A program made the position numbers and the translations under genes. Positions 27,772-54,077 of a stretch of 64,000 bases of DNA are shown one piece after another. The notes under the pieces are model-generated. The model did not search any database, was not told the origin of the DNA, and was given only the letters and a program-made list of their open reading frames with translations. How positions within the stretch are numbered: the first letter of the stretch is position 1; the number at the start of each line of letters is the position of its first letter. The stretch is from sequence record NC_020851.1, one strand, 5' to 3'.

Positions 27772-27885
27772 TACGAAAAAGTAAGACCATCAGGGAATGG
27801 TGGAGTTACTATTTCCCAGACACCCTAAGTCTGGGATATGAAAGACGTGTTTAGACACCCTATAGGTCTTGGTTTGAGGGGTGTT
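27772..27885 (-). ncRNA. PhotoRC-II-like structured psbA leader RNA
   Basis: Hairpins cccagac/gtctggg and accat/atggt, and an aaacacgtctttcatatcc core, directly upstream of psbA. Family call is from recall and position; boundaries approximate. Confidence 0.7.
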
Positions 27886-27932
27886 ACAAACAGTTAAGAA
27901 ATGTGTTGATTCCTTAACTTGCTGATGTATTT

Positions 27933-48582: not shown

Positions 48583-48662
48583 TAAGGTCTTGCCATGCAC
48601 GCCACTTGCTCTTTAACCAGAAGCAAGAAACTGGACGGTAGTAACTTCCACCCGCACCAACG
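48583..48662 (-). ncRNA. wcaG-like RNA motif
   Basis: ttggtgcgg...gtggcgtgcatggcaagacctta directly upstream of gmd/fcl; matches my recollection of the cyanophage wcaG motif and its usual context. Confidence 0.7.
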
Positions 48663-48715
48663 GCATTTGAGAGATGCCGTAAACTCATAAGAGGGTCATA
48701 ATGACTCCACCAGGT

Positions 48716-52995: not shown

Positions 52996-53066
52996 AGCGG
53001 AATACCAGAATCGAACTGGTGACGAAAGGTTGGAAACCTTTAGTTTTGCCTCTAAACTAATTCCGC
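52996..53066 (-). tRNA. tRNA-Gly(TCC)
   Basis: Cloverleaf; anticodon loop TTTCCAA. Confidence 0.92.
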
Positions 53067-53112
53067 AGAGTGGGAGATTGCTCCCCCATCACACTTCCTT
53101 CACACAAGAAGT

Positions 53113-53141
53113 ATTATAAGACAAGATTTGATTCTTGTCAA
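53113..53141 (-). promoter_or_regulatory. sigma70 promoter upstream of tRNA-Gly
   Basis: TTGACA-17-TATAAT with an internal inverted repeat gacaaga/tcttgtc. Confidence 0.75.
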
Positions 53142-53142
53142 G

Positions 53143-53215
53143 TGGGTTTAGTCAGGCTCGAACTGACGACTTGCAGGTTAAAAGCCCGATACTCTACCAA
53201 CTGAGTTATAAACCC
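53143..53215 (-). tRNA. tRNA-Lys(TTT)
   Basis: Cloverleaf; loop CTTTTAA. Confidence 0.9.
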
Positions 53216-53238
53216 AAATCTACTTATTAAAAGTAGAA

Positions 53239-53310
53239 AGCCTTCGACAAGATTTGAACTTGCGACCTGAGCTTTACAAAAGCCCTGCTCTACCACTGAG
53301 CTACAAAGGC
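53239..53310 (-). tRNA. tRNA-Thr(TGT)
   Basis: Cloverleaf; loop TTTGTAA. Confidence 0.92.
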
Positions 53311-53314
53311 AAGA

Positions 53315-53401
53315 CGGAGGATGTTGGATTCGAACCAACGGAAGATTTACACCTTCGACAATTTAGCAAACTGTTGCTTTCGACCACTCAGCCAATCCTC
53401 C
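53315..53401 (-). tRNA. tRNA-Ser(GCT)
   Basis: Long variable arm; loop TTGCTAA. Confidence 0.92.
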
Positions 53402-53406
53402 GTGAA

Positions 53407-53480
53407 TGCCCGAATCCGGACTCGAACCAGAGACCTCACCGTTATCAGCGGTGTGCTCTAACCATCTGAGCTATTCGGGC
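53407..53480 (-). tRNA. tRNA-Ile(GAT)
   Basis: Cloverleaf; loop CTGATAA. Confidence 0.93.
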
Positions 53481-53484
53481 AAAG

Positions 53485-53569
53485 CGGAGAGGGTGAGATT
53501 CGAACTCACGGAGGCTTTCACCTCGCTGGTTTTCAAGACCAGAGCCATAAACCACTCGACCACCTCTCC
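53485..53569 (-). tRNA. tRNA-Ser(TGA)
   Basis: Long variable arm; loop CTTGAAA. Confidence 0.93.
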
Positions 53570-53575
53570 AGGTTT

Positions 53576-53702
53576 AAGAGAAGGGCAGATTCGAACTGCC
53601 ATTTGCCAAAGGACTAACTTAAACGTTTCGTCTCGGACGGGAGGTAATCCGTCTCTGCCACCTTGAATTCTAGGCGACCACCATCCTAATAGGTGCTTCT
53701 CT
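53576..53702 (-). ncRNA. 127-nt tRNA-like RNA with no canonical anticodon arm
   Basis: Perfect acceptor stem AGAGAAG/CTTCTCT and T-arm GGCAG-TTCGAAT-CTGCC enclosing several extra hairpins. Confidence 0.7.
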
Positions 53703-53711
53703 TATGCGACA

Positions 53712-53740
53712 ATCATACCAGAAGTGGTGATGATTGCCAA
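53712..53740 (-). promoter_or_regulatory. Promoter cassette of the tRNA-like RNA; near-duplicate at 53899-53926
   Basis: TTGGCA-17-TATGAT and TTGACA-16-TATGAT, sharing caatcat...ttctggtatgattgtc. Confidence 0.65.
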
Positions 53741-53813
53741 TGGAGAATAACGGACTCGAACCGTTGACATCCTACTTGCAAAGCAGGCGCTCTACCAACT
53801 GAGCTAATTCCCC
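53741..53813 (-). tRNA. tRNA-Ala(TGC)
   Basis: G3:U70 pair; loop TTTGCAA. Confidence 0.93.
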
Positions 53814-53815
53814 AA

Positions 53816-53887
53816 TCGGGGTGGCAGGGATCGAACCTGCGACCCTCGCTTCCCAAAAACGATGCGCTACCTCTGCGCTACACCCCG
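53816..53887 (-). tRNA. tRNA-Pro(TGG)
   Basis: Cloverleaf; loop TTTGGGA. Confidence 0.92.
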
Positions 53888-53926
53888 AAGATGAGACAAT
53901 CATACCAGAAAGGTAATGATTGTCAA

Positions 53927-53998
53927 CTCCCCCGGCAAGATTCGAACTTGCGACAAAGTGATTAACAGTCACCGACTCTACCGCTGAGCTACAGGGGA
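53927..53998 (-). tRNA. tRNA-Asn(GTT)
   Basis: Cloverleaf; loop CTGTTAA. Confidence 0.93.
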
Positions 53999-54003
53999 TC
54001 AGG

Positions 54004-54077
54004 CAGGCAAGGAGGGACTCGAACCCCCGACCAACGCATTAGAAGTGCGTGGCTCTGTCCATCTGAGCTACTTGCCC
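54004..54077 (-). tRNA. tRNA-Arg(TCT)
   Basis: Cloverleaf; loop CTTCTAA. Confidence 0.92.

Follow-up and report, generated by a model that had tools for sequence, protein, structure and literature searches.

A tRNA-shaped RNA element with its own promoter in the tRNA cluster of Synechococcus phage S-SKS1, an architectural analogue of T4 species 1 RNA

Known tRNA-shaped RNAs and the S-SKS1 locus

Phage tRNA clusters are now viewed as weapons against host tRNA-targeting defences and tRNA scarcity. In the tRNA cluster of phage T4, the record annotates rnaC (species 1 RNA, 139 nt) and rnaD, two RNAs of which the biological role is still unknown (PMC3014915). When folded, rnaC presents a seven-position acceptor-like stem (Watson-Crick at five positions, U.U at two), an adjoining T-arm (CCGGG-UUCGAAU-CCCGG) and two long non-tRNA hairpins enclosed by them. 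It reaches 17.5 bits on the tRNA-Sec model (L127, 2409-2547, minus strand), which is below threshold. A T-arm is absent from rnaD, the fold of which is non-significant (z = -0.83). The tRNA-like domain of tmRNA (SsrA), which is processed and CCA-tailed like a tRNA, also stacks an acceptor stem on a T-arm and has its halves separated by a large non-tRNA insert. YrlA (RF02553), a bacterial Y RNA of about 110-130 nt bound by Ro60/Rsr, is a non-coding tRNA mimic that imitates both the T-arm and the D-arm (PMC4201824). In marine Synechococcus, tRNA supply can decide the outcome of cyanophage infection (PMC11726456).

The element described here is located in a stretch of 64,000 nt (the window) and corresponds with 100% identity and at identical coordinates to the marine cyanophage Synechococcus phage S-SKS1 (HQ633071/NC_020851). 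It spans 127 nt on the minus strand (53576-53702; element position i is window coordinate 53703 - i) inside a cluster of 10 tRNA genes called by ARAGORN (52996-54077), all of which are on the minus strand as well. An unannotated gap of 170 nt between tRNA-Ala and tRNA-Ser(TGA) holds the element, and the tRNA-Ser(TGA) gene indeed starts 6 nt downstream of it in the ARAGORN calls, as a preliminary description of the sequence had claimed. Together with tRNA-Ile(GAT), tRNA-Ser(GCT), tRNA-Thr(TGT) and tRNA-Lys(TTT), this gene makes up a run of five downstream tRNAs (53142-53569, minus strand) with spacings of 2-23 nt. None of the 10 tRNA genes of the array encodes its CCA. The open reading frames across the region are spurious, being artefacts of read-through of tRNA genes; a short frame, MVVA-stop, lies inside the stems of the element with zero spacing from its Shine-Dalgarno-like AGGA. 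An exact-protein look-up with the upstream open reading frame returned S-SKS1 itself as the sole match. No annotation is present under the 127-nt match in the records of S-SKS1 and of two S-CAM7 isolates. In the literature, neither a description of the RNA nor a transcriptome of S-SKS1 or S-CAM7 was found. The 127-nt RNA gene is a missing annotation in both phages.

Among the described systems, rnaC comes closest. Both RNAs are encoded in a phage tRNA cluster on the strand of the tRNAs, measure 120-140 nt, combine an acceptor-like stem that abuts a T-arm with a non-tRNA interior, and fall outside Rfam. Nonetheless, they share no sequence similarity, and the covariance model R1 finds no match in the T4 tRNA region. 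The element also differs from rnaC in lacking the two U.U oppositions in the stem and the two long interior arms, and in having a D-arm-like hairpin, which rnaC does not possess. Moreover, rnaC is located at the end of its cluster, whereas the element stands behind its own promoter and heads a transcription unit. In architecture and genomic setting, the element is the cyanophage counterpart of rnaC: an analogue, not a homologue. The other systems are more distant. Compared with tmRNA, the element is one third of the size and has neither the G3:U70 alanine identity pair nor pseudoknots nor a credible tag frame. YrlA uses the ends of the RNA for the Ro-binding helix and has a closed acceptor-like stem, while the ends of the element form the acceptor stem itself; the RF02553 model matches only the neighbouring tRNAs and not the element.

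A tRNA-type frame around a non-tRNA interior

The acceptor stem recognized in the preliminary description (AGAGAAG/CTTCTCT) consists of seven Watson-Crick pairs and directly adjoins the T-arm (GGCAG-TTCGAAT-CTGCC), as stated there. Its 5' strand AGAGAAG (element positions 1-7; 53696-53702, minus strand) is invariant in 20 copies of the element, and its 3' strand CUUCUCU (positions 120-126) occupies 53577-53583 on the same strand. The discriminator position is U53576 and CCA is not encoded. As A53703 and A53575 are both invariant, an eighth pair (A53703 with U53576) and an A discriminator are possible. Across the copies, the T-arm (53584-53600, minus strand) reads GGCAG-UUCRAAU-CUGYC and carries the tRNA-like residues G53, U54, U55, C56, R57, A58 and C61. 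The acceptor/T-arm unit is of the tRNA type, with 7 bp on a 5-bp T-stem, a T-loop of the form UUCRANY and the G53:C61 pair. A purpose-written scanner, which looks for a T-arm motif with an adjacent 7-bp acceptor lying 40-230 nt upstream, detects 11 sites in the window (the 10 tRNAs plus the element), compared with 0.01 sites per window in composition-matched random windows. The acceptor/T-arm pattern is far beyond chance. The folding z-score of the whole molecule is modest (-2.06).

Between the two arms of this unit, a D-arm-like hairpin (H1) is followed by a 78-nt insert with multiple hairpins, which replaces the anticodon arm and the variable loop. All interior hairpins are on the minus strand. 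H1 (53679-53695) is a D-arm-like CACC/GGUG hairpin with the 9-nt loop URUUAGGAU (UAUUAGGAU in S-SKS1), H2 (53657-53678) has 7 bp (GUCGCCU/AGGUGGC, including two G.U) and the 8-nt loop AGAAUUCR (AGAAUUCA in S-SKS1), and H3 (53636-53653) has 5 bp (GRCGG/CCGUC) and the 8-nt loop AUUACCUC. Their predicted pair probabilities (0.98, 0.94 and 0.83, respectively) are in the range of those of the acceptor stem (0.96) and the T-arm (0.86), while the two distal hairpins only reach 0.43 and 0.31. Of the interior hairpins proposed earlier, cacc/ggtg, gtcgcct/aggtggc and gacgg/ccgtc stand, and gacg/cgtt is weak (P = 0.43). RNAalifold, run on the eight distinct alleles, likewise keeps the acceptor stem, the T-arm and hairpins H1 to H3, and draws the weak region (positions 68-102) differently, as a hairpin H4' (53612-53632) formed by 71-73/89-91 and 76-78/85-87, where the single-sequence minimum free energy fold gives other weak pairs.

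The loop of H1 contains GG, as D-loops do, and in tRNAs the GG of the D-loop docks on the T-loop. There is no linker between the acceptor stem and H1 (tRNA positions 8 and 9), nor between H1 and H2. With U8, N9 and the linker at position 26 lacking, the RNA need not adopt a true L-shape. If the T-arm is stacked on the acceptor stem, as in tRNA, an end-to-end stack of H1 and H2 becomes possible, comparable to that of the D and anticodon stems. Such stacking would bring the GG-containing loop of H1 near the T-loop and the loop of H2 to the far end, and H3 and the weak region would come in the place of an oversized variable arm. The H2 loop also carries the palindrome GAAUUC, which could support loop-loop dimerisation.

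The element is neither a normal tRNA nor a tmRNA, as the preliminary description had put forward. With a tRNA defined by at least 29 bits on the Rfam model RF00005 or by a default ARAGORN call, the ten neighbours score 54-71 bits, whereas the element has no match to this model and is not called by ARAGORN at default settings. A scan against Rfam returned no match for the element, neither at the gathering threshold nor at E-values up to 10. A tmRNA was rejected since ARAGORN -m reports nothing at a 70% threshold, Rfam gives no match and the third acceptor pair is A3:U70, in agreement with the earlier remark that G3:U70 is absent. The element also lacks an anticodon arm (5-bp stem and 7-nt loop with Y32, U33 and R37): H2 combines 7 bp with the 8-nt loop AGAAUUCA, and H3 combines 5 bp with an 8-nt loop that has a pyrimidine at the place of R37. 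As no loop resembles that of an anticodon, decoding is unlikely. The roles suggested earlier (a decoy for anticodon nucleases or for sensors of uncharged tRNA, or a ligand of the ribosome or of a synthetase) are conjectural, and among such roles an anticodon-nuclease decoy or an A-site ligand looks unlikely, given that none of the loops obeys the anticodon-loop rules.

Class II tRNAs (Ser, Leu, Tyr) share the order of the acceptor, D-like and T arms with the element, and the extra hairpins of the latter, between the second arm and the T-arm, take the place of the variable arm. Yet, the extra region of the element amounts to 56 nt compared with 13-21 nt in class II tRNAs, and the element has no 5-bp/7-nt anticodon arm, no U33-type loop, no U8/N9 and no position-26 linker. 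The T-arm scanner also picked up tRNA genes of 110-130 nt in two viral contigs (L214, 3806-3935; L213, 2920-3029), in which about 35-55 nt are inserted at the anticodon-loop region. These long genes have textbook acceptor, D and T arms, whereas the D-arm of the element is not of the textbook kind.

Promoter, distribution and conservation

The earlier proposal that the element has a promoter of its own, TTGGCA-17-TATGAT, was borne out. It is a sigma-70-type promoter with a TG extension (53740-53712, minus strand). The -35 hexamer (53735-53740) is TTGGCA in S-SKS1 and the consensus TTGACA in 14 of the 20 relatives; the -10 hexamer TATGAT (53712-53717), extended by a preceding TGG, ends 9 nt before the acceptor stem. 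The distance from promoter to element is 37 nt in all copies, except for two contigs with 36 nt. Both hexamers are conserved across the copies, and the spacer between them is variable. The next promoter downstream is found only at 53141. As no promoter separates the five tRNAs that follow, these are presumably co-transcribed with the element. A reading of the promoter region as an RNA hairpin or terminator was rejected, since natural variants disrupt the hairpin and keep both hexamers.

The promoters before tRNA-Pro (53899-53926) and before the element (53712-53740), both on the minus strand, represent the same module, TTGACAATCAT-N-TATGATTGTC, which is almost perfectly palindromic (GACAATCAT/ATGATTGTC). 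Several other IMG/VR phage contigs (L170, L171, L173, L175, L188, L204, L222 and L260) have this module upstream of tRNA genes. In L093 and L122, the tRNA-Pro/tRNA-Ala block is absent and the promoter resembles a hybrid of both module copies, as expected from recombination between the two promoter copies. A perfect consensus promoter, TTGACA-17-TATAAT, is present at 53067-53141 (minus strand) upstream of tRNA-Gly(TCC). This tRNA gene, preceded by a GGGAG/CUCCC hairpin in a leader of about 45 nt, closes the array as a transcription unit of its own. In L170, L171 and L260, the leaders between the palindromic promoter and tRNA-Gly(TCC) carry hairpin loops with ACCACCACCUCC, similar to the anti-Shine-Dalgarno end of 16S rRNA, for which Rfam gives no match.

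Pattern scans and nhmmer recovered at least 20 copies of the element, all at least 96% identical: S-SKS1, two isolates of S-CAM7, three IMG/VR contigs and at least 14 metagenome contigs. S-CAM7, which belongs to a genus other than that of S-SKS1, is 96.1% identical to the query. Eight alleles are represented among the 20 copies; they differ at just eight positions, and every difference is a transition. They occupy at least eight different arrangements of the tRNA array, with the same promoter throughout. The upstream neighbour is tRNA-Ala, tRNA-Pro or tRNA-Asn, and the downstream neighbour is tRNA-Ser(TGA), tRNA-Leu(TAG), tRNA-Gln(TTG) or, in four contigs (L011, L051, L067 and L091), an HNH insertion of about 360 nt between the element and tRNA-Ser(TGA). 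This insert (L011, 1023-1340, minus strand) begins after a duplicated 5' piece of the tRNA-Ser gene and encodes an open reading frame of 105 amino acids with a motif of HNH endonucleases, which Pfam HNH_3 matches at E = 5e-5, narrowly missing the curated cut-off. The insertion recalls segB of the T4 tRNA cluster.

The gene has a fixed boundary. Among the 18 length-matched copies, 8 of the 127 sites of the element are variable, compared with 14 of the 42 immediately flanking ones (Fisher p = 3.7e-5), an approximately five-fold lower variability. At the 3' boundary, variability climbs one base past the acceptor/discriminator position; at the 5' boundary, the last four bases upstream of the stem are invariant as well. 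Conservation of the element equals or exceeds that of the adjacent tRNA-Ser (8/127 versus 17/86 variable sites). Predicted stems contain three to five of its eight variable sites, depending on the model adopted for positions 68-102, and all substitutions in the confidently predicted stems keep pairing: G.U becomes A-U in H2 (G28A), A-U becomes G.U in H3, and G-C becomes G.U in the T-stem. In the model of the weak region, the substitution in H4' (A-U to G.U) retains pairing too. The 20 copies, all at least 96% identical, contain no compensatory double change, because no divergent homologue was found.

The search for such homologues was broad. Distant blastn against 50,697 phage records matched only S-SKS1 and S-CAM7. 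Five pattern scans of IMG/VR (with the loops, the acceptor plus T-loop, and the promoter) yielded only near-identical copies or chance matches, as did a metagenome scan among the matches listed (at least 14 near-identical copies), and a scan of GTDB genomes revealed no divergent homologue. Likewise, covariance model R1 retrieved no homologue from about 1 Mb of phage loci (including 49 loci with 335 tRNAs) and the T4 tRNA region; its best weak matches (13-17 bits) are class II tRNAs. Either the family is narrow, or its relatives have diverged beyond recognition by these tools. The element is a new, narrowly distributed family among the tRNA-shaped stable RNAs of phage tRNA clusters.

Alternative readings and a proposed role

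The element could be a non-functional relic, i.e., a tRNA gene broken by insertion or rearrangement, of which the apparent conservation reflects young copies spread by recombination. The near-identity of all 20 copies, the lack of compensatory changes, the absence of homologues beyond a narrow phage group (INPHARED, IMG/VR and GTDB, and metagenomes among the matches listed) and the visibly mosaic arrays, which recombine at repeated promoters, are consistent with such a history, and the conservation could partly reflect the recent spread of one allele by recombination between arrays. Nonetheless, the element varies five times less than its flanks, with variability rising one base past the 3' end of the acceptor. 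It has also kept its own consensus promoter and been retained in at least eight array arrangements and two phage genera, its loops and junctions are conserved as much as its stems, and it shows no likeness to any particular tRNA isotype. Since the element is more conserved than its flanks, we do not regard it as a relic, and consider this reading unlikely. A second possibility is a class II tRNA-Leu(UAA) interrupted at the start of the anticodon loop by an intervening sequence of 47 nt, which would be removed to decode UUA. ARAGORN does draw a tRNA-Leu(taa) with a 47-nt intron when the threshold is lowered to 80% and introns are allowed, the weak top matches of the covariance model are class II tRNAs, and none of the 20 arrays contains a tRNA-Leu(TAA). 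Syn9 and other cyanophages carry this tRNA, the supply of which can decide infection (PMC11726456), and in L188 and L222 it is preceded by the same palindromic promoter. However, the model stays below the normal ARAGORN threshold, needs a C.U mismatch in the anticodon stem and, when forced, folds about 11 kcal/mol worse (-30.7 versus -41.5). The natural variant G28A would break this anticodon stem, yet improves H2. A comparison of the 'spliced' sequence with 231 distinct phage tRNAs places it no nearer to tRNA-Leu than to the remaining isotypes, and the 'intron' and 'exons' vary at the same rate (3/47 versus 5/80). Moreover, we know of no splicing route for a 47-nt insert in bacteria. An intron-bearing tRNA-Leu(UAA) was rejected as the main reading in view of the sub-threshold model, the worse fold and the lack of isotype affinity, and it appears highly improbable.

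Other readings retain a functional RNA, and place the function in another fold or in a single loop. If positions 50-57 pair with 112-119, the 3' two-thirds of the element form a long imperfect hairpin atop the acceptor stem, in which a 24-bp rod replaces H3 and the T-arm; the tRNA-like fold would then be ancestral only, or one of two states of a switch. The cloverleaf-like and rod folds are nearly isoenergetic (-41.5 and -38.5 kcal/mol in S-SKS1), with the rod favoured in S-CAM7 (-36.1 and -41.4), L018 (-38.8 and -40.1) and L060 (-40.9 and -42.2). In addition, the sole mismatch of the 8-bp helix, A51.C118, has been repaired independently by A51G (G-C, five copies) and by C118U (A-U, four copies). 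On the contrary, the commonest haplotype (11 of the 20 copies) retains this mismatch, and both substitutions are tolerated as wobble pairs in the tRNA-like fold. It should also be noted that the rod was noticed because stabilising variants favour it, which is a selection bias, and that the energy models take no account of modified bases or of docking between the T-loop and the D-loop. An acceptor stem with a perfect T-arm right beside it, complete with all seven conserved bases of the T-loop and closing pair, cannot be accidental. A rod or switch is doubtful, even more so than a relic. Finally, the H3 loop might imitate the 3' end of 16S rRNA and bind either ribosome-binding sites of mRNAs or a protein that recognizes the 16S tail, with the tRNA-like frame serving stability only. 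The loop sequence GGAUUACCUCC matches the 16S 3' end GGAUCACCUCC, as read from the 16S gene in L287, at 10 of 11 bases, and hairpin loops with ACCACCACCUCC recur in the tRNA-Gly operon leaders of other cyanophage contigs. Yet, the similarity is non-significant, with a shuffle p of about 0.03 and an equal score for 38 of 1998 window tiles. Complementary sites are not enriched in the window (16 versus 13.6 expected), and two of the six core bases lie within the stem. The odds that the element acts as an anti-Shine-Dalgarno mimic are accordingly very small.

In our view, the element is probably a real gene, the product of which is a small and stable RNA that imitates the upper half of a tRNA without decoding. 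RNase P, RNase Z and the CCA-adding enzyme recognize their substrates by the 12-bp minihelix of acceptor stem and T-arm. As the minihelix of the element is of this kind, maturation by tRNA-processing enzymes can reasonably be expected, and a tRNA mimic matured in this manner, as put forward in the preliminary description, is the reading of the nature of the RNA with the best support. Transcription would start from the element's promoter and continue into the five tRNAs, making the 127-nt RNA the first product of a polycistronic transcript. The 5' end may arise through removal of a 2-3-nt leader by RNase P, or through initiation at or next to the mature end, while the 3' end may be freed when RNase P generates the 5' end of tRNA-Ser, with RNase Z or exonucleases contributing. 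Since the tRNAs of S-SKS1 encode no CCA, the host CCA-adding enzyme must supply theirs, and the same enzyme probably adds CCA to the element. Given such a maturation route, the tRNA-like ends would provide processing and stability, and the conserved interior hairpins would carry the function. Our best guess is that the RNA, rather than decoding, binds or titrates a factor of the host or the phage by which the acceptor or elbow of tRNAs is recognized. A more elaborate and tentative scenario is a new family of phage tRNA-shaped riboregulators, in which a self-promoted cassette moves between cyanophage arrays and enters host maturation by means of its tRNA ends. It would then regulate infection either by titrating a tRNA-binding host factor (a tRNA-targeting defence, or a processing or modification enzyme) or by switching between the tRNA-like and rod-like folds. 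An independent, strongly conserved RNA of the rnaC design in abundant marine cyanophages suggests that tRNA-shaped RNAs that do not decode may form a recurring functional class and not just a peculiarity of T4, and the S-SKS1 element offers a second, genetically distinct system for learning their role.

Some other RNA genes were observed along the way. A 'tRNA-Pyl(cta)' is annotated in S-CAM7 (MT586120; L002, 1629-1702) and in L095 (266-341), and ARAGORN agrees with this assignment. The genes align with tRNA-Arg(TCT) genes and have the loop CTTCTAA, and they more likely represent tRNA-Arg(UCU) one base out of register than an amber suppressor. The IMG/VR phage contig L173 (1761-6614) comprises 22 tRNA genes and a permuted tmRNA of the two-piece type with the tag AANKIVKFTRHSAPVAV. 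In the window itself, Rfam identifies two cyanophage-associated motifs on the minus strand, the wcaG RNA at 48591-48688 (89.6 bits) and PhotoRC-II at 27801-27896 (78.8 bits).
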